Below are positions 7,117 through 43,724 of a DNA stretch of 64,000 nt, one piece after another (within the stretch, counting starts at the first letter, position 1; the number at the start of each line of letters is the position of its first letter). Source of the DNA: Chlorokybus atmophyticus (taxonomy: Eukaryota; Plantae; Mesostigma and Chlorokybus algae); the NCBI GenBank assembly GCA_009103225.1, contig RHPI01001715.1, positions 124,001-188,000 of the forward strand, in the 5' to 3' direction. Below the pieces are notes generated by a model, which saw only the letters and a program-made list of their open reading frames with translations, had not been told where the DNA came from and did no database searches. The position numbers were made by a program, and so were the translations under genes.

Positions 7117-8898
7117 GGTGTGCACGTTTGCAGTTGTACTTTAACGCTATGCTTATTGCTGTCGAACGACATTTATATATCTTAGTTGAGTAGAAAGCAA
7201 CTCACGTGTACTTTTATTAACGTAGTAGCTACACCGGAGAACCAATCAATAGTTATAATATGGCTTGGGTTGTAGTTGGTTAGTAATTAATTAGTTGATG
7301 GTTGATTAAATACCTTATTAATAACATCAACTTCAATGCATTTACTTCATCATTGACCATAACATTTGAAGCTTGAAGTATACATTACCTCGTCAAGTGA
7401 GCGTGAGTCGTAAGCTTAGCATATGCGGCAACTCTACTGCCGCTACCAATGGTGGTGAGTTACAGTGCATCGACACTATAATGGTAGAGCCCCCCCCCCC
7501 TCCCTACCTCTAAATTTGCCCCGCAGGGCGGATACGCCATGTTTGCCTCAACTATAACGAATATAAGAGTTGGCCGCAGACGTCACGTACGGTTCAGACT
7601 GAGACACAACAGTTATGTTCCAAAACATTTAAAAAATAAAACACGTTCTATATGCATGACGCATATAAGGAACCAACATTTTACGGCTATATAATATCAC
7701 GCAGAGTTGCGCTGCAAAGCGCTTTGCAGCGTGACTTTGCGTAACACGTGATGCAACGTGACTCGGCGTCACACCATTGTCAAGTACACGCATTGTTACA
7801 CATGTTGTTCGACGCAGTAAATGCGGTCAATGCTGCAATGCTTCGTGTACAACGTTGATTGATGCATGTAATCGTGCCGATAAATGTATGTCTTGTTATG
7901 TAATGTATGTATATTGAAATTACGGTTTTATTTTCCATTTTGGTGGTTTTTAGTTTTAATAGTTCGTGTGTTGTTGCTTCTGATTGTCGCATAATTTGCT
8001 TTAACAATATAAGCTTAAATGAACCTTAACATAACAATGTTGTTCGGAGTTTTATTCTTTGTTCGTTCGGTCATGCTCAAACCTATGTTTAGCCCTAGCC
8101 CTGCTTGCGGCAGTTAATGATGACGATGGTTAAGGAAAACGACATATAGCTACTCATGTAGCAAAGCAAGCCATAATGAATTTGGTGATCAGGCTTGCAA
8201 TCACTTTTGGTGCGATTTACGATTATGATTTTGATTTCATGTCAACCATCTCGATGAATGCGTTAGTGGGGCTTTACTAAACACATTGCCTTACAGCACA
8301 CGAATATTATCGCCGCGCGTGCACTAGTCTTTGCACACAACAACCGTGTGACAGGTAACCACGCTAGTCATGCATGCATGACTAGCAGGTGGGCGGTAGA
8401 GGTTGCCTAAAGGGCAGAGCGTAGGTAGCTCGCCAGCGCGTTGCTTAGCGGTGGGTGTATGTGGCGTTGAGGTGAATGTGTTGTGCAGTGTGAGGTGTTG
8501 CATGCGTGGTGTATTGCGTGCATGCGCGATTGCCCTTCTCAGTTACTGTACATGTTCGGTATAACAGTTTGCGCTAATTGGCAAATGATGGAGTGAAGTG
8601 CAATAATCAGCAGCAAATGTATTTGTACAACAGCAGCGCCTCCAGGCAACAATCGTGGGGACCATAACAATCACCCAATGTATCACAGCATGCAACAACC
8701 TCCTTCTTGCAAGGTGCTGGTTGTTATATTGCGTGCGGGTCTTCCGCGCGTTTGCTGCCACATCGCTCCGTTCCCTTCATGTTACTGAATACAAAAGCAC
8801 ATCAGGGCCATGAGTAACCTGGGGCATGCGGCCAGTCAAGCCGACATGAGAGCAAACTGAACATAGCAGTGGAAAACGCAAGGTGTGATGCTGTCTGG

Positions 8899-11800
8899 CT
8901 AATGTTGCAGCATGCACGCATGCACGTGCCTCAAACTGTATACCTTCTTTTTGCTCTTTTTCAAGGACAGTGTCGCAAAGGCTGCTGTTGCAGCGCTGAT
9001 GTGTGTGAGGGATGCGCTAGCTGCTTTCCTTCCAGCTTTGACCAGCAGCTCTTCCAGGTTTTTCTTCTCTTCAGTCACAGCATGAAGATCCTTCTGCATG
9101 CTCGCATTGCTCTGTCTTGAATTCAGCAGTTCCTGCTGAAGGCTTGCCAGCTCGCTCTGTTTGGAAGCAAAGTCCTTTTTTGATGTGCTGAGCTCCTGCA
9201 TTACACAATCATAGTCAACGCTGCAATCACACTGCTGGGCATCCCATATGCTTTCATACCAGCCACGACAGTCAAGTTTTGTGACAAATGTGAGTCAGCA
9301 AGCTGTGATGATGCGTGTAACCTGTTGCAAGCGCTGGTGGTTTCGCTGTCTTTGAGACCGTTGGATGACCAGGGCAGCAGCAGTACGCGTGGCATCCTCT
9401 GAATGCAGCTGAAGCAACCCACCGCATCACATCTGTTTGCAATCAAGCCGACAATGCAAATACCTGGATGCAATCAAATGTATGCCTACCTGGATCGCAG
9501 TCTCATAACTGGCAATGCGCTGCTGCATCTCCATCAGTTGCTGCTTCTGTGCTGCTATTTCTGTTAAGAGGACCACATGTTGATGCGTGACAGGCCAATG
9601 TCATGTCAAACACAACAGCTTACCATTGTTGGCTGTGTCCAGGGAAGCTGCTACTGTGTCTCTGGAGGCAGTAGTTGCTGCCAGCTCATCTTGCAAACCC
9701 TGCGGTTATATCGGTTAAGCACACACTAATCACAAACATGCCAACATGTGCCGTGAGGAGTCACCACAGCATGTCCATACATCTCGAAGCTTGCTCAGTT
9801 CCTTTGCTTGGCCTTCTGCAACCAAGTACTGTTGATGCCACTTGCTGCTCTCCTCGCGAGCGGCAGCCAGTTGCACATTCAGCTCCTGACAGTTTGCCAA
9901 CAGGTCATCACGCTGTTTCTCCAAGGCAGCAGCGCTAATCGCTGCCTCCACAAGCTGTTGCTTGAGCAGGAGACACTGTTCAGACAGGCCGGCGGACTCC
10001 TCACGTGTCGCCTGTAATAACTGAATTAAACAATCCCGCTCTGTCGTACGCGCAGCTGCCTCTGCCGTGAACTGCTTTACATGTTCAGACAACTGCCGAC
10101 ACGATTCTGATAGAGCGGCGGACTCTTCCCGCGAGGATTTGAGTGAGTAAGACAACGACTCTCGCTCTGTTGTCAGCTCAGCTGCCTCTGCTGTAACCTG
10201 CTTCACGCGCTCAGACAGCTGCCCACACTGTTCCGACAGAGCGGCAGACTCTTCCCGCGAGGCTTTGAGTGAGTGAGACAGCGAGTCTCGCTCTGTCATA
10301 AGCGCAGCTGCCTCTGCTGTGGACTGCTTCACGCGCTCAGACAGCTGCCGACACTGTTCCGATAGAGCGGCGAACTCTTCCCGCGAGGATTTGAGTGAGT
10401 GAGACAATGACTCTCGCTCTGTTGTCAGCACAGAGGCCTCTGCCATGGACTGCCCTACGCGCTCAGACAACACATTCCTATGCTTGCTGAGAGCCAACAC
10501 TTCCGCTTGAGCAATTCCTAACTGTTCGGCTAGGTTGAGCCGCTGCTTCGACAAAGACTCTATCTCAGCCACAAATACCTGCAACCCACACTTGTCGGTG
10601 AGCAACAGCTACAAAGCATGGTATGGTGATCGTATGCTTACTGTTGTGCGCAACTGCATGCTTACCTTGTGCTTCTGCTTATGTGCAGCAGCTTCCTGAA
10701 ACAGCACAATCGACAGTCAGCAAAGCGGATGGCATACTGTATGCGATCACAAGCCAGGAGATGACTTAAACATGCAGGACAATCCTATTGTGAATGTGCA
10801 ACTTGAGGACATGACAGACAAAGCAAACATGTCACTTTCAGTAGTGTACCTGTTGCAGTCTCTCTTCGTGCTTTGCTTCAACGGCAGATAACCTGCAAGC
10901 ATAGTAGCAGTGAGGAACATCCCGCTCTGACTGGAGAAAACATATGCACTGTCTTCAGCGCACCTGTCTGCCCACTGTGCCGTGAGAGCCGACAGCTCCT
11001 GATGATGAGAATCCCTTTCTGACTTGAAAGCCCTTTGCATGGCCTCCTTCTCTTGTTCATGCAGTTGCAACCGCTGCTTTGTAAGGGACAGCTCTTCCTC
11101 TCTGGTCAAGACTACTGCCTGCGTTGCCACGTCAGCTGTGGCAAAGCTTTCTATGACAACCCGCTCATTGCAAGCAAATGTCGCACACATTGTGGCTTCC
11201 TCTCACACACACAGCGTTCAAAAATGCGCAACCAACTTCCCCTTGTGTTGGCAAATTCGGTAAAAAAACAACTGCCACACAGTGTATACCTCCAGGGAGT
11301 GCAGCTTGTCATTATGCATATCCAGTTGCTCCTGCCATGCACAGCACGATAAGACAGAGTACCGTTGTTGCCAACAACCTTGCAATGCTGGTGTGCCATC
11401 CCATGGCTTGAGTAAATGGTTGCTGCGGACCGTGCCCGAAGTCCACGGGGGAACGTTCTTCAACAAGATACAGGGTTGCAATAAAACAAACTCTGTGACT
11501 TGACTTTAACTGGCACCGTTCGACTGACATTAGCCATGTTGGCACAGACCATCCAACACACTTATATCGCTTACCTGCAGGCTATCACTGAGCTCCTGTA
11601 AATCAACAACTTCGTTGACGATGGCTTTCGTCTTGACCTTCATTGCCTGTGGTCCCCAGTATGCCATCAATCGCTCTATTACGAACCAGCGATAGCATCA
11701 TGCGCTGTCGTGCAAAGACTGTACCCTTTGTCCAAACTGCAGGGAGTTCAAGCTTTCCTCCGCATGCATTTGGCAGGGTCCCACATTGACGATGAGTGAA

Positions 11801-28466: not shown

Positions 28467-30568
28467 TTAACGGGAGATGGGGCAGAGCACATTGCCACGG
28501 CAGCACCCGTAGAGGCTTGGATTGTAGGCTGCGGTGCCACAGCAGGAGGTCTCGCCGCGGGAGACGGCGCCGTTGTGGAGGACCCCGTTGCAGCAGACGG
28601 ACTTGAAGCTGGAGTAAGGCCTGTTTCCGCAACACGCGTCGAACTCGCTGGCGTCGTACAGCACCCCGTTGCAGCAGGTGAATGTGGCGCTGTCGTAGGG
28701 CTTCCCACCGCAGCATCCTGTCCACTCAGTCATCGTGTACGTGTAAATCACGCCGCTGCAGCAAAACGCCCTGCATTGCAGCCAACAAGTTCAGCGGATG
28801 ACTCTGTGAGGTTGAGACACAAGAACATTCGCACGCACGTGCACGGGCACGCACGGGCACGCACGCACAACAGTTAACACGCACTTGGAGGGGTCGTAGG
28901 CCTTTTCGTCGCAGCATCGGTAGGTAGAGGGTGGGAAGTTGTTGAGTACTCCAGCGCAGCAGAGCTGCTGCCTTGGTTGGTAGGGCCTCTTACCGCAGCA
29001 TTGGAAGGTGGTGGATGGGTTGTTGTAGATCACGCCGACGCAGCAGATCTGCTTGTTGGGGTCAAACGCCTTCTGTCCGCAGCACTTGTTCGTTGTCGAG
29101 GGCACGTCGAACACAGTGGTGCCGCAGCAAGTTTGCTTCGCAGGGTTGTAAGGCTGACGGCCGCAGCACTTGTACGTTGTGGAGGGGAAGTTCTGAACCA
29201 CATTGGCGCAGCAGATCTGCTTATCCGGGTTGTAGCTCACGGTGTTGCAGCACCTTGTGCGCCCGACGCTTTGCGACTGGATCACATTGTTGCAACACAG
29301 CGACTTCGTTGGATCGTAAGGCTTGCCGTTGCAGCAAGCGATGGTGTTTGGATACACCACGCCGCAGCAGATCTGTGCAAAACGTACACGATTGAAAACA
29401 TCAGTCAGGCTCGCGCCCTTGCTCTATGTGTGTGTGTGTGTGACTTACCTGTTTGCCAGGGACGAATGATACAGTGCGGCAGCACTTGGTGTAACCGGCA
29501 GATGGGCCGTTGTCATTCACCGTGCTGTTGCAGCAAAGCTGCACAATGCAGTCGCAACAGGGCAGTAAGCACACACGTGAACGCAAGGAATAGCTATCAT
29601 ACACGCATGCTCAGGCACACGCGCGTGGTTGTGTGTGTGTGTGCGTGCGCGTGCGCGCGCGTGTACGCACGCACCTGCTTGTCAGGGTTATAGTTCACTT
29701 TCCCGCAGCACCTCGTTTTCCCTCCCTCCACACTCACCAAACTCCCTTCACAGCACACGTACTTCCCCGAGTCGTACGGCTTCCCCGCGCAGCAGGCGTC
29801 CTGCACTCCCGGTCCCACTATCGGACTAAGCGTCTTCCCGTCGCAGCACAAATACTTGCTCGAGTCATATGGCTGGGCACCGCAGCAGGCGTCGTAGTCG
29901 GTGGGGTAGAGATGGTCAGAGCAGCAGAAGAAGGTGGCGCTGTCGTAAGGCTTGCCGCCGCAGCAACCGGTGTACTCGGAGGAAGAACGGTCGTAGACCT
30001 GGCCGCTGCAGCAGAAGGACCTGGAGGACATGTGGGGAGTGTGTGAGAGAGATGTAAGTCTGTAGGTATTAAGCGGACAGTGGTGACGGAGGGTGAGGGG
30101 AAGTGTTGGCTTACTTGCTGGGGTTGTAGGTTATGCGGCCGCAGCATTGGCTGATGCCGTCGTTTGGGTATAGCTGACCGTCGCAGCACTGTTGTGAACA
30201 TGGACAGACACAAGACAAGACAAGACAACAGAGTTAGTTGACAGGCCGTCAATGTGTGTCTCGCCCTCCGCTCTGGCAAACAGAGCAAGGTGGGCAAATG
30301 TGCATATGAAAAACTATGCTTGTGGACGTCATTCTAGACTGGTGGCGGGGTGCAAAGCACAGCAGCAGTGATATGGCAAGTGCCAGCAGCATGCAGGCCA
30401 AGGGCACCATGGGGCACGGCAGGTGGCAAGGGTGATGCTGGAAAGAAGGAGGGTGCTTACGATGTATGTGGCGGGATCATACTGGCCATCCACGCACTGC
30501 GCCTGCGCCGTCACCGCCGCCGCCGCTGCCAGCAGCAGCGCTGCCAGCGCCAGATGATTGAAGTTCAT
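28467..30568 (-). CDS. Secreted galaxin-like dicysteine-repeat protein, multi-exon
   Basis: Signal peptide MNFNHLALAALLLAAAAAVTAQAQC. Roughly 20 CC-containing units such as CCGGKPYDSATFFCCSDHLY, CCNTVSYNPDKQICCANVV, CCGQKAFDPNKQICCVGVI. First in-frame stop at 28467. Confidence 0.88.
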
Positions 30569-32319
30569 CGTCACCCAACACCTGGCAATGCAACACATAA
30601 GCCGGAGTTAGGTACTGGCCAAAGCCACAGCAACACGGAGTTACATGAGCTTACTACATGCTCAACCTACCAGCGACCTTGCCGGATGGCTTTACCACCG
30701 CCGCCGCCGCCGCCGCCGCTGCCTGCACAGCCCACAGACAAACTATCTTCTTTGAGGTAAGCAGAGATGCCCACTGTTTTTTTGCTAGTGAAGCGAACAG
30801 TGACTGAGACTGACGTGCAGTGCGTGGCTACTGGTCACCACTTCTTGGGGGGCCAAACCGGCCCACAGCTCAAACCGCCGGCCACTTAAGTGAGTTCTGG
30901 GCTGCAGCGGCTGGGCGTTGACGGAACCATTAGCGGTTTATAACCGGTAGGAGACCGATGTACCGCCCGGTTTTGTCGGTACTCGCGGTGGCGCTACGGC
31001 TTGCGAAGCCACACACGTACACCTTGCACGCCATCACCCGCGCGTGACCGAGATCTGTCCGAACTAACTGCCCTACCGGTTACATATTTAGCGCCTGACC
31101 AGCTGGCGGTTGAGTCGAGGCGCCATGTTATTTGACCCATGTGCATTACGGGCGGATTCATGACGGTAACGTGACGCTGTGTAACCAGTCACATTAGCGT
31201 ACCGGTCGGTGGTGCTACGGAGTCATCGCAGCGTGTGTCAGTCCGACGTACCGGCTACAAATGCGGAGACCTAATGCTGACGGCTGCGGTACGGCGCACG
31301 CAACAGTTCAGCATCCCTGCCTATCTCAGTCAGGACGCCAGACGCCTTTTGCTTATGCCGGCTTGCTGAGATTGCTCTGGATGGACGGCTTCGATGGCGC
31401 TCGCGACGGAGATAGACCGTGAACCGAATGTGAACACCTCTGATCGTTACGCGTTCACCGCCTTTTGTCGGCGCTGTTCCCCTTTGACCGCCGTGCGTTA
31501 ACGGCTGTCAATCAGCTGTGTGGCGTCAACGACCAGTGTAGTGCATGAAGTCGTTCGGCTGTTGACCATGTTTGATGACGCAGTAACTATAGTGTGTAAT
31601 CAATTAGCGTTAAAGGGTAGAGTGGATTAGTTAGAACAAGGGTGAGTAGTGGCGGCATGTCTTTGGGGTATGGGGCCTGCCCCGACCTCGTACCGCCAAA
31701 AACGCGGCCGTTTTAACCACTAACTGTGCCGCAATTGCACTAAATCCCTAGCAATTTGGGTCGCCGTTGGTAAGCGGTTGCCGCTGAGATATTTTTCAGC
31801 ATCTTTTACGCATCTTTGCAATGATTGGCCATTTTGCTGCCTTTTTGAGCAACTGGCTGTTGTCACCGTTGCGATCCCATTTGATCAATCTCATGCGTGA
31901 CCAAATGGTGGCCTAACGATGCGATTTTTCGTTTGGTTGAATCTTAACGTTAAGGTAATTCAGGTTAGCATTATTTTGATGGTCGTAACCTCGGCATTAT
32001 TTACTAAAAATCGCAGCACGTACCGTGGCGTGAACGTTACGTTGATTATTAAGTTTTAAAACACTTAACAGCGTTTGCTAAATACATGGCACCATGTTGC
32101 GCCATATCGCCGCATATGTAATCATATGGCACCATGTTGCACCATATCGCCGCATATGTAATCATGTCGCAAAAGTTTACTACACATCAGAGATATTGTG
32201 CATGTGGATTTGCACCTTTGCACGCCCTCATTGCTGGACTGTGCCGAGATGGTTCTTTTGGATGGCGACAAATGCCAGGGCGGTTGATATGTTCCTGATG
32301 TGTTGTTTCGTCATCCGCT

Positions 32320-35300
32320 ATGACTTATGAGCAACATTGCGATTTGTCTCAGCATTGCGAATTGTGGGACGACTGCGATGATTTGCTTTCCTGTTGGCAA
32401 GATGCACAACGTAAGTTTGTCACGCGAATGCAATGTTGTTCGTTGTGCGGGCATGTACAGTTTTACTCTGCTGCTGCTACTTATCGTCCAATGTATCGAC
32501 GATCAGTATCCACCGTTGCACCATATGATTTGGCTAATGTTTTTATGTCCGATTATACCAAGTGTGATAGTGATTACTACCAATGCCATCGATGCAGTCA
32601 CGGGTCGGAGCGTTCTGTTACATTGTATTACACAGCGCAGTGTACATTCGCAAGTTGTTGGAGATACATCCAATGGTAGTGCAGATGTTGTCCCTTGTTA
32701 ACACGTCCATGGCGCTTTGCGACTTATATAACTCATACAGTTTCACTTCGGGCCAAATTCAGCAGTTGAATATGATTAACGGTCCGTTTATCACTTGGGA
32801 TGAGTTTACACATCAGAACCAACATGCCATCTTGTTGCTGGAGTTGTTGAGCGAGCTATTATCGTCCAACACTCTGGTTCAGAAATATCAGACCTTGGCA
32901 GAACAACCATTTGGTTCTGACGGCATCCCCACTGTCGGTTCATCTACTATTCGTAGCATCATGCAATGATTGTGTCTCGTGCACAGGATCGTAATCCTTT
33001 GAACATTGCTGGTGAATCAGCATACACATACGTTTTAACCACTTTGTTGCCATTTCCTTCGCGCAGCACAGTTGAAGTCACAGTGGACACCATGTTGCGC
33101 GTTGGACATATGTCGCTGCGTGAGCCTTGTTTTCCTCTTTTGATACACATGGATACAGGTGGTGTGTACAATATTCCTGGTTTAACTGTTGAGTCTGCTC
33201 TGTTTCCCATGTTGTTTCCGCACAATCGTGGGTTCTTTGATGGTAATGTGTACAGCAGACTGTCAGACTATGTCAAGTTCCGTCTTACACAATCGTTCTC
33301 AGTTTTCACATTGTACAAGCCTTATTTGCTGTTGATGTACCAAATCCGTCAATCACTTCTTACAGTCAGAAAGTGCCGCGAAGTTGCTGTGGACGCTGAT
33401 ATTGAAAAGTTCCTCAAACAACGACCTACTGCCACAATCAACGATGCCATCAAAAACGCTGTAAAATTTCGTGTCCCTGGTGACATCATTGGATCTCCGA
33501 GTTGGCATCGACAAAAGTTGAGTGAGCTGCTGTGTCTGGTTGAGCATTGGGGTATGCCTCATCTCTTTGTCACCATGACTGCAGATGAAGTGTCCAGTAC
33601 CAACTTCCCTGAGATCATTGATTTGCAGAATGTTCTCCACAATGTCTCCACGCAACTTAGTTGGCGCGATGCCCCTGTGGAGTGCGCACGTTTGTTTCAT
33701 CATCGGTTCAGCACCTTCTTTAAAGAATATATCATGCAAAAGGATATCCTTGGACGTGTGATGCACTATGTTATCAGGTATGAAACACAACACCGTGGAT
33801 CTTTGCATGCACATGTTATGTTGTGGTTACATCCCGACGATGTTAAACGAGTTTGCAGTGAAATCACTGCGTTTATCCCCGGAGATTTTGACCATGCAAA
33901 TCAGCAAATAATTGTACCAACTGATTCTAAACTGCGAGTCCTTTATGAATATGTTGTACGCAAGCAAATGCACAAGTGTTCTGATTTTGGCAGTGGCTGC
34001 AGAGCATTTGACAACAAGTGCGACATGGGCTTTCCGTATCCCGTACAACCAGATCGTCGACCTCAGTTCAACACAGAAACGCGCAGGTACGATTATTACA
34101 GACCACGCACTTGTGACCGCAATGTTGTTCCCACACATCCAGTGCTTTTATTGTTGTGGGGTGCTCATTGTAATGTGTTGCAAGTCACTGACAGTCATTG
34201 GAGCAAGTATTTAGTCAAGTACACAACAAAAATGGAACCTTGTGGCACTGTTGATGATGCATTAGACACCAATGCACTCGGTTTGCAAGGATTGACTGTT
34301 AACGAATTGCGCATATTGAACACAATGTACTTGTCCAAACCCATTGCTCCAGCTGAAGCTGCTTTGATATGTTTAGATATTCCCATCATGCAAATGTCGT
34401 CCAATGTAACATATGTTGACACGCGTTTGCCTAACAATCGTTCTCGCATAGTGAACAGTCGTGCACGGACAGTAATTGTGCATCCCATTCATCGTTATTG
34501 TGTCAGGCCTGACGAGGTAGAAAGAGTCACAATGTACAACTACTTTCGACAGTACATGCACCGAGATGGAGACACTGTGCCACATAACACTGTGCGTACT
34601 CTAAGAGACAGACTGAATGCATTCGTTTATGAGTTAGCTGTCCCGCGCATCATCAGATTCACGGATTACCATCCTGTACTTAGCATTGAAGGGTTTTGTT
34701 TCAATTTACTTCTTCAGCGGGTTACTTTTCGCTTTGAAGTTGATATGATTTCTTTGAACAACCAATCACGCACTTACTATAAAGAATGTGTGTTGCGGGG
34801 TTTCATCAACAACACAAACCGCAGTTTGTTGACACATGTCACGCGCTATGCCGAATGTCATCTATACAATGATGTTAAGATTCACCATATGATAAATGCC
34901 ATAATGCAGACCACTGATAATGCTATTAATGCCTTGTCTATGGCTGCAGCTGGTCCGACAAATAGTCAAACTGCACCAGAACGTACCACGCAGTATCCAA
35001 CAGCTTCATCATCCAATCCTGCATCTCCAGCTTCAACTGTGACAACGGACTCAGATGTATCGGCGCCGATGTTTCAAGGTACATTGAATGTTGAGGAGTT
35101 TGCGTTTGCGAACAATCTCTCTTTGACCAGCCAGCAAGAACGCACCGCAAGTAGTATCATTGCAACACCGGTTGGTCAACATGTGATATCTGGTTGTCCA
35201 GGAACAGGCAAAACATTTTTGACCAGATTCATCACTCACAAGTTGCGCGTTGCTGGGATACCTGTTTTACTCAGTGCTACAACTGGCGCTGCGGCTTTGC

Positions 35301-36388
35301 GGCTCAGCTCATCAGCTTCAACTGTACATTCCAACTTCGCAATACCTGTCAACGGTCAGCAACTCCGGTTTGTAACTGCTATGGATGATGCTTACAAACT
35401 GTTACATCATTGTCGAGTATTTATTATTGACGAGTTTTCTATGATGACATCGCGGTTGTTTGACTTGGTGATGCTGCGCTTACAGCAAGTTCATGGACCC
35501 GAATATCTACAAACAATCGGCATTGTATTGGTTGGTGACCACAAGCAACTGCCAGCAGTTTGTGGACACAAAGTCCAAGACACATCGCAGGTTTGCCACA
35601 AATGCCATATTTCTGCATCACAGAGGTGGCCATTACGTAAGCAACATTTTTTATCTGTTTCAGTGCGTCATGCTTCAGACCCTCTGTTTGCTGAATTCTT
35701 GATTCAGATTCGTTCTGGCATACCCAGTTCAACAGAGATAGCAGATGCGTTAGGTGGCTGTCTGGTCACTTCGGAGTACTTACAACAGTTACCAAGTGAT
35801 GCAACCATATTGTGTTCACATGTACAAGACACACTGGCTTTCAACAGCATGATTGTGAGACAACGTTTTGCAGCCGATACCATTGTGCCAATACAAATTA
35901 CTTCTAATGCAGTGAACGTGCCCGAGCTACACGACTGGATTCACAAGCCCAAGTTCAACTTATTACCTTCAGTCGCCAAGGGAGCAAAGGTGTTGGTTTT
36001 AGAAAACGTTTCACTGCAAGATGGTGTAGCCAATGGGTCTTTGGGAACAGTGACGCAGTTTAGATACTACAAAGGTAATGTGAGCAGTATACAAGTTACA
36101 TTTGACCATTTGGCAGACTCCATGTGGATGCGCCGAACAATACAGCAAACAACAACGTTTCAAGGCAAAACGTACTACAAAGCTGTGTTTCCTTTGCAGC
36201 TAGCGTATGCAATGACAGTGCACAAGTGTCAAGGTGCAACGCTGCAATCAACTACTGTTGTCCACATGCAGGAAGCTTTTGCTCCTGGATTGTGGTATGT
36301 GGCGTTGTCGCACGTGACAAACAGGGCCTATTTACGGTTGACGCGTTTACCGCGCCCTGAAGAGATGACGCCCGTTCCTGGGGATTGA
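32320..36388 (+). CDS. Helitron Rep (HUH endonuclease)-PIF1 helicase; main ORF 32966-36388, N-terminal part in frameshifted ORFs 32320-32679 and 32583-32969
   Basis: ESALFPMLFPHNRG; motif 1 GMPHLFVTMTAD; DAPVECARLF; HUH YETQHRGSLHAHVMLW; motif 3 KYLVKYTTK; Walker A GCPGTGKT; Walker B IIDEFSMM; LVGDHKQLPAV; QLAYAMTVHKCQGATL; YVALSH (motif VI, normally SR). Confidence 0.93.
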
Positions 36389-36419
36389 CGTTGATAATTG
36401 GTAAGTCCAGTTAGTGTTG

Positions 36420-36720
36420 CGCAATAGTGTGACATATGTTGCATCATTTCGCGATATGATACGATGTTGCGCAACGTTGTTTGATATCGACGCATATCGC
36501 GAGTGTTTGAGCATGTTAGATCGATGTTGCACAACATTGCACTACATGCTGCCAAGTTGGACGATATTGCTTTAGGCGACATGGTACGCTGTTGCGCAAC
36601 GTTGTTTGATATCAACGGATATCGCATGATGTTTGTGCATGAATGAACGATGTTGCAAAACATTGCGTTATATGGTTCCATGTTCGACGATATGGAACCA
36701 TATCGCGTAAGATGAACTGC
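36420..36720. repeat. ~120-bp tandem duplication rich in GATATCG motifs, just 3' of the RepHel stop
   Basis: TGTTGCGCAACGTTGTTTGATATC.ACG.ATATCGC occurs at ~36465 and ~36590. Confidence 0.8.
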
Positions 36721-37136
36721 ATCTCATGACCACACTGTACGCATGTACGGTTTGATGACATGGCACATTCAGTTGATTGCCGTATCACCCGTCATCCAAC
36801 CATGCTTTGTATGCAATCATCTCCTCCATCCCATCAACTCTTCTGACCAATCGCATGGCGGCATGGCTTAGCACGTGGTGTTCTGCCGACACAGACCCTT
36901 TTCCTTGCCACGCAGATATACATTGGCAATATATCTAGCGCTGCTGTAAATGTACACCAGTTGAAACATCAAGTCGCAGGGCACTGTGCATACATGCCTG
37001 TCGCATCACCTGCCTCAGACACCTGCCCATTGTCGGAAACTGTCACCTCAGCCAGACACAGGTAACAACGTGGCTCAATTGGCCTCTGTTTGATCTCGAA
37101 CCTGTGAGTCATTAGTTGGCGAGCGTTACATTGACA

Positions 37137-37846
37137 ATGCACTTGGTTGACAGCATGGACTTTAAGGGAAAAGACCTGTTCGAGAGGCTCCACGCTCAAA
37201 TTTCCAATGACGAACCTGGCTCTAAGCGTCCACGTACCAGTAGCTCTGGAGGTGATGCGCCTGGTCGTCCGCTGACAGCGAAACAACTGGTAGCATGTGA
37301 CTCAGCAGGAATCACTCCCGACAAGCTTGAGGGGCTATTCACCAAGCCAGAGGCCGATAAGTTAATTCGCCCTGCCAAAGAGAGAGCTCAAGAGTTTCGC
37401 ATAAACCACGGGGACTCTATTGCAACTGGTGAGAAGCGGAAAATGTACACTGACACACTGTGGTGCATGTGTTAACTGATGCAAGTATGTGTAGGAACAT
37501 GCATCTACTACCTCAGAAAGCTCGGCATCGACATTTCTGATGACCTGAAGCGCCAAGTAGCTTACAAGCTGTGGGACACTCTGATGCGCAAGGACAACCC
37601 AGAGCTTCCTGATAATGCAGAGCCAATTTACGCTAATCAGGTATGTATCAATGTGACACTGGGTCATTGGCCAAATACCTGTACTTAACAGATGTTTCAC
37701 AGGTGTTCGAGCTGGTTCACATTCGCAAAGTTTGCAACTGGGAGACAGCGCGTTTCATGTCGCAAGGAAAGGCAGAAAAAATCATTGAGCAAATCAACAA
37801 AGCAGACCCAAGGGAAGCTCCAGTAGCAAATGTTGCTGCCAATGAG
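37137..37846 (+). CDS. Spliced ORF of unknown function (at least 3 exons) with three related helical repeats; 3' continuation uncertain
   Basis: In-frame splices GCAACTG|gtgag..tag|GAACATGC, AATCAG|gtatgt..cag|GTGTTC and AATGAG|gtgtgt. Repeats: LTAKQLVACDSAGI..TKPEADKLI; IATGTCIYYLRKLGI..RQVAYKLW; IYANQVFELVHI..SQGKAEKII. Confidence 0.65.
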
Positions 37847-38244
37847 GTGTGTGGTTATCCAAGTTGATGATGGGATTACTGTGCTTGCCAAGATTAGTCG
37901 CGATGCGTGAGAATGCTATGGTTGCGTAGCAGAGTTCAACAACAATGGGCACATCAAGCCAGAACCCATGCAGTCGCTCCATCTTTTGTTACACTTCTGT
38001 TTTTGCATTGGCTCCCTTTGTTCATATCCTGTACCCGTGGTCTGTTGCCTTGCTTCTGCTTCGCTACGCATATATGTTCCATATTCAACATCAATCTCGG
38101 ATGTGTACTGCAGCATTCATAGTACCATTGTTCTTTGCAGGTAAACGATGAGGTCCAGATGATCCTGCGATCCTCGGCAGCAAGAAACAGCATCAATGCC
38201 AACACCAACATTCGCGCCTCTGCACGTAACTCAAAAAACGTGCG

Positions 38245-38613
38245 CAACCCATAAACACAGGTGTGAAGTTTATCTACAAGTTGACGCATGTGGCAACACA
38301 AAAAATATATATCGGTCAAAGTAACCACCCAGGTCGACGTGATAAGGAACATCGTAGACACCCGCCCAAGAAGATGTTGCCTGACTTAAATAGCAGTAAA
38401 CCTTTTGAAGAGCAAGTGCAGTTGGAAGTATTAGATAAAGGACATTGCAAGGCGTGAATAGATTGGTTAGAAGCTATGTATATCGCCCAATACGACTCTC
38501 GAGGGTGCAAAGGTTATAATATGGATGAAGGCAACCCAGCGAGGTTCAAAGCATTTTGGGCGCGCCGACGTAGTGGTAGCGGTTTTGGCAATAACAAAAA
38601 GAAAAAAGAATGA
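38245..38613 (+). pseudogene. GIY-YIG endonuclease domain with in-frame stop
   Basis: TGVKFIYKLTHVATQKIYIGQSNHPGRRDKEHRR...KA*IDWLEAMYIAQYDSRGCKGYNMDEG. TGA at 38455-38457; upstream TAA at 38227-38229 in the same frame. Confidence 0.8.
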
Positions 38614-38750
38614 AACTGGCTGTTGTTTGAGTAGGTCACCATGTGTGTTGGACAGTTTGTGTGACACCATGCTTTGGTGTCGATATAATCAATGGGTGCA
38701 TATTGGTGGTGAGCTTCATAAATGTACGTACGCTACGTATGCAAGAACTC

Positions 38751-38918
38751 GTCATGCGACACTGCCCCATACCATTCCATATCATAACATATGGTGTCAC
38801 AGCGATTGATATGCCAACATATGATGTCATATAGCAAGATATGGCAAAATGTCGCGCGACGTCAATGGACATTGTGAGTTCCCTGTGCGTCATGTTAACA
38901 CACGAGCAAAATGGGTTC
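38751..38918. repeat. Left arm of ~165-bp inverted repeat (partner 41271-41432)
   Basis: CATGCGACA..TTCCATATCATAACAT.TG.TGTCACAGCG..ATATGCC..CATATGATGTCATAT..GGACAT.GTGAGTTCCCTGTGC..CATGTTAACA matches the reverse complement of 41271-41432. Confidence 0.85.
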
Positions 38919-38930
38919 CATGATACAGGT

Positions 38931-41090
38931 CTACTCAGGGGGGGGTGGCTGCGAAGGCCCAGCGCCAGCAGCACCGGTATTGTGTGTGTCAACATCCTCA
39001 TCATCGTCACTGCTGCTGAGTTCATATACAGGGAAATCGGGGAGCTCTACACCACGTGGTGGGCGCTGCATAAAAATAAGTTGAAAGCGGCGGCAGAAAG
39101 GACACTCAACTTGAGGGTGAGATCCTGTGCGCAGCTTCTTCAAGCACTGACGGCACAGTGTAGCTCCGCAACATGGCATTGGTAACAACACTTCCACTGG
39201 CTTCTGCTCGCAACAGATCCCGCATGTGTTGTCTTCACTGTCTACCACGCGCTTGCCCTTGTAGTCCTGGCGCACATGTTGCTGCATTTCTTCGGTTGTT
39301 GCTGCTTCATGCAACAACGGGGCAACTGTGCAGAGGTAGGTACAAAGCTTCTCCCATAGTGTTTGGTATAGTTGCGGTTGCAGCTGCCTTTTAACATCTC
39401 TGCGATTGAGGAGCGATACCTGGCACACCAACCAATGAACACCAAGGTGTTGCATTTGTTGATAATTGTCATAATTGTAATTGTTCAGTACCTGTCCGTC
39501 AAGGTCGATCTCTTTCAACATGTATTTTGCCAAGCTGTCCAACTCCTTTCTGGTGACTTCCAGTTCCTGCTGGAAGCTCTCGAACTGCACGCCATTGGGT
39601 TCAACACGCTCACGAAATCGCCAGTTTGCCGTTTGAAGACGCAGGACGCTTGTCAACTCTGAGATCTACAACAGAATGTCAGTTGCTGAAAAATCTAACA
39701 GTGCAGCAACACACACCTTTTTTTTTTGTGCAGCAATTGTCTGGTTGGCTTCTCCAATCTGGCATTGCAGGCGCGCCAATCTTGCATCATTACGCTCATT
39801 GTGTTGCTGCAACTGTGTGGCCCTGCGCTGAACTTCTGTCAGCTGCTTGCGTAAACCCACGATGCTTGCTGCGTCTGCGTTTTTGACACTTTCTGTCATT
39901 TTAACGTGCTCAGCACGCTCTTCGTGTAATGCACGCTCCAGGTCAGCAGAGCGTTGTTCTGCAGCAGCATGGCCTGCACGCAGACCATTGATTTCACTGA
40001 TCATTTTCAACAGCTTTGCAGCGATCTGGGGATCAGGCTGTGTCTGGTTGCGGCGTAGCTGCTCTGCTTGCTTCAGGTTACGCTCGCGAAGGACTGTGTT
40101 CTCGTCAACTAGTTTGAAATCTGCCAACAATGCCATCAGTGGTGTGTGTCAAAACAATGCCACAATTTCCCTTACTTTCGTTTTGTAGACGAGCGTTGTT
40201 TTGTACTTCACGAGTCAGGTGGCCACTGAAGGTGTCGATAGCAGCACGCATAAGCTCAGGTGTAAATTGGTGAGTTGGCAACCGCGGCATTGCTTCCCCT
40301 GCGTTCATATAATTCACGGATCAGGTGGGAACCTCTGCAACGATGACATTGATCACCTGTTTCAGCGTCAGTGACATAAGACGTGGTGGGAGTATCAGGC
40401 GCCATAGACAAATTCCTACGGCGCTTAGACGGAGTCACACGAAGACCTGTTGGGATACATGCATTCAATGAAACCGTTACTGTCACCACGAAGCAGTCAC
40501 ATACCTGTGGGCACCGTCAAGGCACTGGCATTGGAGTCTTCAATAAGATTAGGATCGTATAAGATTTCGACAGGATGCAGAACATCATGCAGCGACGGTG
40601 GCAGGGGGGTTGGTTGCTGCAAAGGCCACGTTCCAACAACTGGCATAAAGGCACCCACAGTAGGATTGAAGTTGTGTCGTGCCACTGCAGCCCGACCCTA
40701 AGTGGCAACAAGTACATAGATGATTACAATCCCACATAAGTCCATCCCATGTGCCATCATGCAAACAGCAACATGCACTCAAAGTAAATTGACAGTGACA
40801 TTGCGCATTGTTAAACTCTCAAGCTGTGGAACAGTTTACTATTCAAACATGCACAATGCATGCTACCATGCAGGACTCACCAGATCCAACCAGTACTTCA
40901 GCAAGTCGTCTTGCTGTTGGCGTGTTAGTGCATTGAAGGCGTCCTTGTGAACACCGCTAGCAAGGTGAGACCTGAAATTTTGCACTCCCACTCTGGCGAT
41001 CCAGCCTTTGTGTAGGCCCGTGAGGTTGCAGCCATAGATGCAAGGGACGAAGTAATTTTCGAAGGTGGCAACACGCCGAGAACCCGCCAT
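38931..41090 (-). CDS. Six-exon gene: N-terminal C2H2-like zinc finger, central coiled coil, C-terminal RING-like finger and acidic tail (putative E3 ligase)
   Basis: All five GT-AG introns, mostly ~55-70 nt, rejoin in frame: ..YWLDL|GRAAV..; ..VPTG|LRVTP..; ..AETG|EAMPRL..; ..QNEN|FKLVDEN..; ..AQKKK|ISELTS... Zinc finger PCIYGC..FRSHLASGVH; RING CGICCEQ..PCCGATLCRQC..CPFCRR. Confidence 0.82.
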
Positions 41091-41270
41091 GGACCTGAGA
41101 AAGAAGACGACGCAATGCACAAACGAACAACGCGGCCGCTAAGCTCGACAATCTTGGCGTCACTGCTGTCCAAGAGCTTGCATGCAACTTGGTTTCCGGG
41201 CCGTGGTAGTCATCGATCATATCGCCCGGGCGCGTATGATATCCCATCATACGCAGGACACATTACGCAC

Positions 41271-41432
41271 GAACCACAGTTTGACTGAATCTCTGTTAAC
41301 ATGTTGCACAGGGAACTCACGATGTCCAGCGACGCCGCGCCATATTACGTCATATGACATCATATGCCGGCATATTTCCGCTGTGACAACACATGTTATG
41401 ATATGGAACGATATGGTGCGATGTCGCATGGC
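41271..41432. repeat. Right arm of ~165-bp inverted repeat (partner 38751-38918)
   Basis: TGTTAACATGTTGCACAGGGAACTCACGATGTCC..ATATGACATCATATGCCGGCATAT..GCTGTGACAACACATGTTATGATATGGAA..TGTCGCATG. Confidence 0.85.
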
Positions 41433-42944
41433 ATGTCGTAAGTGTTTGATTGGCAGAGTTCAGTTAAAATGTGACGGATAACCTCAGTTAATATGACGGA
41501 ACCGAAAATCATGTTTGATTGACCTGAACTGAAGCGCATTCCACGCAGGATACCATATGTGTGATATCCAACATATGCTGTAGAGCATATCGCGACATAT
41601 GATGTCGTATGCTAGCACATCATACGATATGTGATCAAGTGACGCCTTATGCTGTGCTGCAATGCCGCGCGTCGCGTATCATTCGGCGAGATTTGTTGTG
41701 ACTGGGCCGGCCGGCATAGTGCACCCAGACACATCACCGCGCACCACGCACGACGGCCCAGTTACATACGGCACCCGCGCCTCTCATTGGTTAGGCGTCA
41801 ATAGGTATCTGCCGTTCGATCTGTCGCCCAATCAGCCGCACCGCTAGTTTGTGTTGGTCGTGGCTCGACGGTGTATATATATCCTGTATAATATAATTGT
41901 CAGGAATATGGTGTTACTACAACAGATATGTCACGTACCATGCATGTAATCTCTACCGGGAGCATATGCATTTACGTAGTGCAATTGGTCTGTTTATTAT
42001 TATGTACTCATTAACATATTGCCTGAACATTACATGTATACAAACATGTGGGGTGAATTAATACGATATAAATTATAGAATTTATATACACTTATTAAAC
42101 ATGATGGGTATATACCATATTACTACAAGTAATAATACATGTGACTGTGATATCGTTATTATGTACTATGTTTGTATACATAGTACATAATAACATCACA
42201 ACTCGAAGTGTATACCGCGTGGTAGTATGATAATGCCGTGCATCAATTTCATGCCAAATCAAGCCCATTTATAGTACGTGCCGCAAGCAACTGCTTATCC
42301 ACAGCGGTGACCACCGTTTTTACATCAGTAACAACGGGTGATCAACTGATGTGCACGCATGAAGGCCGCGGTTAAACCGCTGATCGGCAGCGCAAAGCCG
42401 ACAGAGGTCAAAGTTGTATCGACGCTAATCGATTAGCGTCAGCCGTGCATCTTTCACCGCCAAACAACAGTCGCGACTACCACCTAAGCGCTGCTAATAA
42501 ACATATTAACACAATAAAACTACATTAATTCATGCGGTCCACTGGCGCAACACTGGAGGTTTCACGCTTGACACTGATGATGGGGCCGGCAAAGCTTTTG
42601 CCGACCCCATCATCGTGCGCGTCTGGTGTCTGGCGTTTGGCGTCTAGACTTGACGGTCTACTTCAGCGAAGATGCCTGCCTACCACTGGTCTCAACTCCA
42701 AAATTGGCTCTATCGTATACAAGATGCGGCAGCAGGTTTTACTGAGCACTGCATGCTGCTGCACAGCACGCACATAGCAGGTAGGCTGCGTACTGACAAT
42801 AATTGGCACTGCCAACTTGGCAGTCACAAGTTGTGCCCAACCATTTATTATTGACAACTTGTGATTTTTGCTTGCAAGTGCTGAAGCTTTTATATGTAAA
42901 TAAGCTTACCTCAATTGACAACACATCGATATAAATCATGCTGC

Positions 42945-43190
42945 ACAGTGCCATGTAGGTTTTAATTGCATAAAAAGTAATGTATTACGTTACGTGATAT
43001 CAAGTGCTCTTGTATCTTAATATATGGGGTGCAATAAAGCAATGCACCCTATAGCTGTTTCGTGCACAGTGCATTGTGCCACGTAGGTTTTGAATGCATA
43101 ATAATCAATGAATGTTACGTAATATCAAGTGCTTTTGTATTCATATAAATAGGGTGCAACAAAGCAATGCACCATGTTGCTGTTTCGTTC
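42945..43190. repeat. ~125-bp tandem duplication
   Basis: TGCCA.GTAGGTTTT..TGCATAA..TTACGT.ATATCAAGTGCT.TTGTAT..GGGTGCAA.AAAGCAATGCACC..GCTGTTTCGT occurs twice. Confidence 0.85.
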
Positions 43191-43724
43191 TATCCAAGCT
43201 TCATGCTGTGGAGCTATCTACGTAGCACATGATGATTGGGAAGAATGGATAGAACGAAATAGCAATTGATTATCCCCCCTTCCTCCCCCGCCCCCCCNCC
43301 ATCTCCTCCATGGTAGACATAAAACGTCACGGTATCGCACGCTGTTACAAACACGACAGCAGCTACAATCGTTGCCACCGCCGCTGCTACCGTTGCAGCT
43401 TTATGCAAAGGACCCCTACAGCTCGAGCTCATTCTATAAAGAGTTTAGTAGGAAGCCCTAAATATGCAAATGAGAAAGGTTCTTGCTTGCTTCTTTTGCT
43501 GTGGTGAATGCTGGCATACGTGTGTGCTGGGTACAGTGTACACTGTACCCAGCACATGTGCTGAGTGCTCTATGTAATGTATGTACCAGCGTTGAGTGAT
43601 GACGCAACAAAAGCATAAAAATATACACAAGCCACTTTTAACAACAATCAGAAAGAAGCCCTAGCTCAAGGGGGACTGCTCCAAAACTGATTAAACTGAA
43701 CTTTGGCACTAAGCGTGCGTGCGA

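Follow-up and report, generated by a model that had tools for sequence, protein, structure and literature searches.

A probable Helitron-like rolling-circle element of Chlorokybus atmophyticus, its GIY-YIG nuclease partner and an antisense RING gene

The stretch of DNA considered here (positions 124,001 to 188,000 of contig RHPI01001715.1, assembly GCA_009103225.1, forward strand; the 64,000 nucleotides are referred to below as the window) belongs to the alga Chlorokybus atmophyticus, and between about 31900 and 41700 it likely holds a recently decayed, ~10-kb copy of a rolling-circle transposon. This Helitron-like element, which can probably be assigned to Helitron2 (HLE2), would combine a RepHel transposase with a repeat-protein/GIY-YIG nuclease and with a RING unit of Chlorokybus. 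This block has a GC content of 0.44-0.49 against 0.52-0.58 in its flanks, and three transcription units lie inside it. A preliminary description, made from the letters of the sequence, had seen in the same place a cargo-carrying element with RepHel, a repeat protein, a GIY-YIG nuclease and a RING gene; the objects themselves are real, while strand, intactness and gene structure needed correction. The transposase gene occupies three adjoining pieces:

32966..36388, plus strand: main RepHel open reading frame (ORF), 1140 amino acids, with the HUH motif (HAH), the YxxxY pair and Pif1-type Walker A and B motifs
32320..32616 (conserved part from about 32365), plus strand: first piece of the RepHel N-terminus, zinc-finger-like (CxxC...CxxC), in a frame other than that of the main ORF, located by tblastn of P0001 and P0004 and by the consensus of alignment A1
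32619..32966, plus strand: second piece of the RepHel N-terminus, in the third frame, with frameshifts at about 32617 and at 32966

The main ORF matched the Pfam families Helitron_like_N (3.7e-25) and PIF1 (1.4e-19), and its top match among solved structures was the Helraiser transposase (7lcc, 3.2e-26), followed by human and bacterial Pif1 helicases (about 1e-20). In alignment A1, which comprises 18 relatives, the HUH histidines H281 and H283 and the tyrosines Y415 and Y419 were invariant, as were the Walker A motif (GxxGxGK) and the DE of Walker B. The HUH, two-tyrosine and Pif1 motifs together with the Pfam matches thus confirm a Helitron-type element with a RepHel transposase, and the three Rep motifs quoted in the preliminary description are present in the ORF. 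The relatives have RepHel proteins of 1100-1600 amino acids that start with the CxxC...CxxC region; measured against P0001, P0002 and P0004, the first ~215 codons of the window gene are split over two other frames, and the joins are gapless. With these conserved N-terminal codons placed in two other frames, 5' of the main ORF, the gene carries two small frameshifts and is not intact, so that what had been called a full HUH-Rep/PIF1 ORF contains both domains and is nonetheless not full.

Downstream of RepHel and on the same strand lie a second gene, hereafter gene 2, and the nuclease domain:

37137..38254, plus strand: gene 2, for a repeat protein, with exons 37137-37428, 37495-37640, 37703-37846 and 38141-38254 and GT-AG introns of fitting phases
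38230..38613, plus strand: GIY-YIG domain, I-TevI-like, in the -1 frame with respect to exon 4 of gene 2, which it overlaps by 25 nt, with an in-frame TGA at 38455-38457

Gene 2 reads as 231 codons followed by TAA, with introns of 66, 62 and 294 nt, and the four exons, GT-AG introns and consistent phases bear out the repeat protein proposed at the outset. Its product consists of three helix-loop-helix-type repeats followed by a basic linker, the repeat unit being approximately "hydrophobic helix, G-I, loop, L-S/T, A-E/K helix". The nuclease domain is equally real, as judged from Pfam and from its alignment with I-TevI: the window copy scored 2e-4 and its relatives up to 1.1e-10, all nine members of the family match PF01541, and the family profile, in which the catalytic positions (Tyr, Tyr, Arg, Glu and Asn) are conserved, aligns with the whole I-TevI catalytic domain (residues 4-92; 1mk0/1ln0, about 1e-5). 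The window domain retains FIY, YIG, RR..EH (the Arg/His cluster), E and GYN, and it is split by the TGA.

The place of this nuclease in the element was assessed on 86 fetched loci of RepHel relatives, whose RepHel proteins are 29-45% identical; among 5.8 billion sequences the nearest RepHel proteins reached only 41% identity. These nearest proteins derive from the green algae Edaphochlamys, Trebouxia and Pyramimonas and from metagenomes, and many of the relatives that bear a GIY-YIG domain appear, judged from the sample series, to come from moss-associated metagenomes. A profile search of the loci found the same GIY-YIG subfamily adjoining RepHel in at least 11 lineages. In four loci (L001, L002, L004 and L006) the domain lies 1.2-2.2 kb downstream of RepHel on the same strand, as it does in the window; in L085 the order is RepHel fragment, GIY-YIG, RepHel; in L023 the domain is downstream on the opposite strand; and in L034, L041/50, L071/82 and L036/37/66 it is upstream on the opposite strand. 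The lineages with the nuclease occur in every major clade of the RepHel tree, and the tree of the GIY-YIG domain, which is short and poorly resolved, does not conflict with the RepHel tree. Since the same subfamily stands beside RepHel across the whole of that tree, the nuclease is best regarded as an old partner and not as a local capture, and its standing as an accessory of the family, proposed on the window alone, is upheld by these divergent lineages. The gene order (RepHel, then repeat protein, then GIY-YIG) does not vary among the five lineages closest to the window; the repeat unit of gene 2 can be aligned across the window, L001, L002, L004 and L006, and L001 and L002 are collinear across RepHel, gene 2 and GIY-YIG and no further. 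The shared repeat unit and this collinearity therefore delimit a conserved core of two genes.

Two of these loci hold further ORFs. In L085 (303-4388), Gag-like ORFs of the PEG10_N-capsid type adjoin the tandem of RepHel fragment, GIY-YIG and RepHel, forming a transposon cluster, and L023 (6004-6740, minus strand; 7986-9602, plus strand) has an ORF of 538 amino acids with a poly-Q run.

The GIY-YIG domain might instead be a selfish passenger of the homing-endonuclease type, spreading by cutting copies that do not have it and taking no part in transposition. Its nearest solved relative is indeed the homing endonuclease I-TevI, its position and strand relative to RepHel differ between lineages, and it is missing from many relatives. 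A passenger would nevertheless have to account for a domain that spans the whole RepHel tree at 29-45% RepHel identity with compatible trees, that keeps its catalytic residues and that stands in a fixed gene order in the five lineages nearest the window; Helentrons, moreover, also retain an endonuclease, which by analogy makes a role in transposition plausible (PMC11417382). We consider the passenger explanation unlikely and prefer to view the nuclease as a long-standing partner of RepHel.

How the nuclease domain is joined to the repeat protein appears to differ between lineages. A stop of the linker ORF is present in all five lineages examined, and in L001, L002, L085 and L006 it is a TGA. 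In L001 and L002 this stop overlaps a splice donor, AA|GTGAGG, and an acceptor, TGCAG|G, stands directly before the GIY motif; because the repeat part and the GIY-YIG domain are in different frames in L002, and because the intervening 333 nt contain stops in L001, the two parts of these genes can be joined only by splicing. L006 (3748-4815) has an intron-less gene 2, in which a 248-codon repeat ORF ends in TGA-CAA-CCA and an intact GIY-YIG domain follows 12 nt further on in the same frame. Stop codons followed by CARYYA, the context met in TGA-CAA-CCA, favour readthrough. The sequences therefore support splicing for L001 and L002 and readthrough for L006 only.

Recoding as the general route to the nuclease, either by readthrough of the stop or by a -1 frameshift in the window, seems quite improbable to us. 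L006 and the stop shared by all five lineages speak for it, and so does the window itself, where the GIY-YIG domain is in the -1 frame and its 25-nt overlap with exon 4 has an A6 run at 38233-38238 that reads A_AAA_AAC in the phase of gene 2. Against this, the parts in L001 and L002 are united only by the splice described above, and no stable RNA structure was found 3' of A_AAA_AAC (z about 0), so that a programmed -1 frameshift in the window is disfavoured; a one-nucleotide insertion or deletion in the A run of a decayed copy is the simplest reading of the frame offset. Whichever route is used, the default reading ends before the nuclease domain in every lineage examined, from which we infer that the element limits how much nuclease is made.

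The third transcription unit runs in the opposite direction and is bracketed by a pair of inverted repeats, designated module S, which are listed here with the gene:

38931..41090, minus strand: RING gene, ATG at 41090 and stop at 38931, with exons 40881-41090, 40505-40616, 40357-40446, 40176-40298, 39717-40120, 39492-39665 and 38931-39419
38753..38900, plus strand: left arm of module S, in which ATATG motifs form a phased array at 38778-38839
41294..41430, minus strand: right arm of module S, on the 5' side of the RING gene, with a GTGAGT donor, and with a CTCAG acceptor just before the ATG

This is the only intact gene of the copy, with seven coding exons, 533 codons, GT-AG introns throughout (five of 51-72 nt and one of 264 nt) and consistent phases. 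The RING-type gene recognised in the preliminary description is thus real and intact; it lies on the minus strand, whereas no strand had been stated. Its product has an N-terminal CCHH-like pattern, a coiled coil, a C-terminal RING-like domain and a tail with a hydrophobic patch followed by Ser, Asp and Glu residues. Pfam RING families stayed below the cut-off (zf-C3HC4_3, 1e-4); seven Cys ligands could be aligned, the canonical His of the RING being Ala in the window protein and Arg in its homologue P0041. The model of the domain (pLDDT 86-92) superposes on the RINGs of Not4, RNF168 and TRIM32 with root-mean-square deviations of 1.8-3.1 A and target TM-scores of 0.38-0.67, and the CCHH-like N-terminus, coiled coil and RING together make the product a probable ligase of the ubiquitin or SUMO pathway.

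The spliced models of the RING gene and of gene 2 were searched exon by exon. An exhaustive HMMER search for the RING gene among 1.84 billion representatives gave a single specific match, P0041 (E 2.5e-23, 44% identity), the remainder being generic RINGs, and Atlas searches likewise returned only generic RING clusters; a likeness of exon 1 of the RING gene to cytochrome c in one Atlas search was dismissed as spurious. P0041 is itself a protein of Chlorokybus atmophyticus (EukProt Chlorokybus_atmophyticus P007982, Chrsp76S09204). Pfam searches of the minus-strand ORFs downstream of the GIY-YIG domain in L001 and L002 gave nothing. Since the gene is absent from the 86 related loci and its sole specific homologue is a Chlorokybus paralogue, it appears to be specific to Chlorokybus, and the proposal that a RING gene belongs to the accessory set of the family is not supported: besides having no counterpart in the related loci, this gene is antisense and has inverted repeats of its own.

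The two arms, of about 148 bp, are 77-91% alike, and the left arm is directed into the 3' end of the gene. Because the right arm contains the GTGAGT donor and the CTCAG acceptor stands just before the ATG, this arm is probably the promoter with an exon of the 5' untranslated region. No target-site duplication was seen at the outer ends of the repeats, and the idea that the RING unit is a transposon with terminal inverted repeats was rejected for that reason.

The regions between the genes of the element share sequence motifs with these arms. Further features of this kind are:

31900..32319: spacer A, 5' of RepHel, with 40 bp duplicated in tandem and, at 32103-32153, CATAT(G) motifs in a phased array; the element's 5' end is further upstream
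36389..37136: spacer B, between RepHel and gene 2, with a 125-bp tandem repeat (36451-36693), CGATATG motifs and AACGTT palindromes
41540..41640: further CATATG/CGATATG palindromes, clustered; the element's 3' end is further downstream

The window has 15 occurrences of the heptamer CGATATG where 5.1 are expected, and not one of 100 shuffles came up to 15; 10 of these occurrences are within the four spacers. CATAT(G) motifs on the same strand are, without exception, an exact multiple of 10 bp apart in spacers A (32103-32153) and C (38778-38839); most spacings are such multiples in spacer D (41341-41371), and spacer B has spacings of 20 and 60. A strict test found six phased arrays of this sort, for any 5-mer, in the 64 kb, three of which are spacers A, C and D; none were found in the relatives. 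The enrichment and the shared phased motifs substantiate the related CGATATG-rich spacers that had been noticed between the units. Because the spacers before all three genes have CATATG phased one helical turn apart, a common regulation of the three genes is pointed to, and the phased arrays are the best evidence in the window that the region 5' of RepHel and the two sides of the RING gene form one system.

The same arrays bear on the possibility, which we rate as somewhat unlikely, that the RING gene is not cargo but an independent host-derived gene, or a separate mobile unit within the ~148-bp repeats, that lies adjacent to the element or is nested in it. The opposite strand and the inverted repeats (38753-38900 and 41294-41430), the missing counterpart at all related loci, the 44%-identical paralogue annotated as an ordinary Chlorokybus gene elsewhere and the fact that this is the sole intact gene in a decayed element would all fit such an origin. 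On the other side, the outer ends of the repeats show no target-site duplication, the CATATG arrays phased at 10 bp that mark the spacer 5' of RepHel recur in the flanks of the gene, and the gene lies within the same low-GC block, so that the RING gene as a Chlorokybus unit of the element remains our preferred reading.

The class of the element can be approached from its content. Helitron-like elements fall into HLE1, the canonical Helitrons, and HLE2, made up of Helitron2 and Helentron, whose marks are inverted repeats that are short and asymmetric, a pair of hairpins and T|T targets (PMC3627910, PMC11417382); Helentrons carry an AP (apurinic/apyrimidinic) endonuclease (PMC3627910, PMC11417382). 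No Pfam match to the AP endonuclease family (Exo_endo_phos) was obtained in RepHel or in the other scanned ORFs of the element, which is therefore not a Helentron. Placement in HLE2 is probable on indirect grounds, namely the green-algal and apparently moss-derived RepHel relatives and a published HLE2 family of Sphagnum with a GIY-YIG domain.

The ends of the element were sought as well. Short asymmetric terminal inverted repeats were not found, inverted matches of 9-10 bp between the two flanks occurring only at about the number expected by chance. One 9-bp inverted match pairs 31891-31899 (TCATGCGTG) with 42354-42362 (CACGCATGA), a length expected by chance; GC-rich hairpins (-15 kcal/mol) directly follow the copy at 42354-42362, and the pair would bound an element of about 10.5 kb, being otherwise unsupported. 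No second copy of the element was found within the 64-kb window, an exact look-up of the RepHel ORF for copies elsewhere gave no match, and word-indexed homologue searches with the RING ORF and the RepHel C-terminus gave no close matches. The loci L085 and L086 are identical and hence uninformative on the boundary of the element. As to its state, the RepHel gene has two frameshifts and the nuclease is out of frame and interrupted by a nonsense codon, so this copy cannot be autonomous.

A number of observations weigh against the reading of the stretch as one element with a nuclease core and a RING cargo. In five lineages the nuclease gene is on the other strand or upstream of RepHel, and many related loci have long flanks without a GIY-YIG domain, most of these with a fragmentary RepHel. 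No homologue of any exon of the RING gene was found in the 86 related loci by tblastn, blastp or a RING regular expression, and the gene is antisense and lies between inverted repeats of its own. Both the extent of the element and its placement in HLE2 are inferred. Finally, a fold search with the repeats of gene 2 started from a poor model (pLDDT 61.5) and gave no significant match (best Z 4.6; a Rho N-terminal domain appeared at only Z 3.8); because of this the helix-extension-helix reading of the repeats stays a guess, and their DNA-binding role is likewise a guess, read from the sequence pattern. Taken with the conserved transposase, the recurrent nuclease and the phased spacers, these observations leave a decayed Helitron-like element as the likely identity of the stretch.

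An element of this kind might work as follows. RepHel would nick and unwind the element for rolling-circle transposition, and the second protein would bind DNA through its repeats and supply, through the I-TevI-like GIY-YIG domain, a second DNA-cutting activity, a role that would match that of the AP endonuclease of Helentrons. The nuclease domain would be made sparingly, the default reading stopping at the linker and splicing or bypass of the stop adding the domain. The Chlorokybus family would have a third transcription unit, on the opposite strand, for a protein with a CCHH-like N-terminus, a coiled coil and a RING, and the three genes may stand under common regulation through the phased CATATG spacers. 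Target nicking by the nuclease and an anti-silencing role of the RING protein are guesses. A broader version of this scheme is speculative and, as a whole, rather improbable: it holds that there is a green-lineage class of Helitron2 type in which a repeat/GIY-YIG second endonuclease is ancestral, required and deliberately kept scarce, that Chlorokybus added the RING gene, and that the promoters are tied together by CATATG arrays bound by a protein encoded by the element.

Helitrons are thought to need RepHel alone, and extra genes are usually treated as captured passengers. That the nuclease has been kept beside RepHel down to about 30% identity, in green algae and in apparently moss-derived lineages, argues for a role, and makes the GIY-YIG protein a concrete candidate for cleavage of the second strand or of the target in rolling-circle transposition. 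Comparable cases are the AP endonuclease of Helentrons and the exchange of endonuclease modules between retroelements. As new details, the RING gene and the phased arrays matter so far for one alga only.

Around the element, a GC-rich segment at 41650-41890, past the last spacer, has two CCAAT boxes and a run of TATATATA on the plus strand, and no coding ORF follows it. An AT-rich block at 41990-42200 contains long perfect palindromes, for example with a 16-bp stem at about 42156-42195. A 125-bp tandem repeat occupies 42942-43188, and a C-rich run that includes an N is seen at about 43270-43300. On the minus strand at 28467-30031, just upstream of the element, are ORFs for a cysteine-rich repeat protein with units of the form CC..KPYD...CC.

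Our literature search found no paper on Helitrons of Chlorokybus, nor any that treats a RING gene as cargo of a Helitron. The nearest published case is HelenSM92, an HLE2 family of Sphagnum magellanicum described in one sentence as having a "captured" GIY-YIG domain (PMC11417382), and the earlier impression that the combination had not been described is hence only partly right. A GIY-YIG domain in one Helitron2-type family, mentioned in passing, is therefore what was known; new here are the nuclease as a partner across the family, its joining by splicing in two lineages, the Chlorokybus-restricted RING gene and the 10-bp-phased CATATG arrays. The HELIANO survey (Nucleic Acids Research, 2024) lists 20 recurrent extra domains, among them OTU, UCH, F-box-associated and Ulp1 of the ubiquitin system, and does not name RING (PMC11417382).

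HelenSM92 resembles the present element in being a green-lineage RepHel element with a GIY-YIG domain (PMC11417382), but it was treated as a capture by a single family, while here the nuclease is family-wide and part of a gene for a repeat protein, to which Chlorokybus adds a RING gene and phased spacers. Helentrons are likewise rolling-circle elements with a second endonuclease besides the HUH nuclease, yet theirs is an AP endonuclease fused to RepHel, whereas the GIY-YIG domain is here in a separate gene, with no Exo_endo_phos domain. Helitron2 elements of Chlamydomonas and others (Bao and Jurka, 2013, PMC3627910) are also green-algal RepHel elements, though defined by asymmetric terminal inverted repeats and two hairpins that were not found in this copy. 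Penelope-like elements are eukaryotic mobile elements with a GIY-YIG endonuclease as well, but they are retroelements in which the nuclease is fused to a reverse transcriptase, and they have no sequence link to this element beyond the superfamily. With homing endonucleases of the I-TevI/Seg type the nuclease shares a catalytic domain that aligns over its full length and the catalytic residues; I-TevI, however, has a C-terminal zinc finger and helix-turn-helix, while the present protein has N-terminal repeats and is eukaryotic, spliced and transposon-borne. SLX1 joins GIY-YIG and RING in one protein, whereas the RING is here in a separate antisense gene, and the match of SLX1 to the nuclease profile is weak and covers the first motif only (E 0.01-0.4). 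With ANKLE1/LEM-3, which combine LEM and GIY-YIG, the comparison turns on a LEM/SAP likeness of the gene 2 repeats that is a reading of the sequence pattern, unsupported by the fold search. A pairing of a nuclease with repeats is found in the plant EFFECTOR OF TRANSCRIPTION factors, in which DNA-binding repeats accompany a GIY-YIG domain with nicking activity and whose origin goes back to mosses (PMC6585611).

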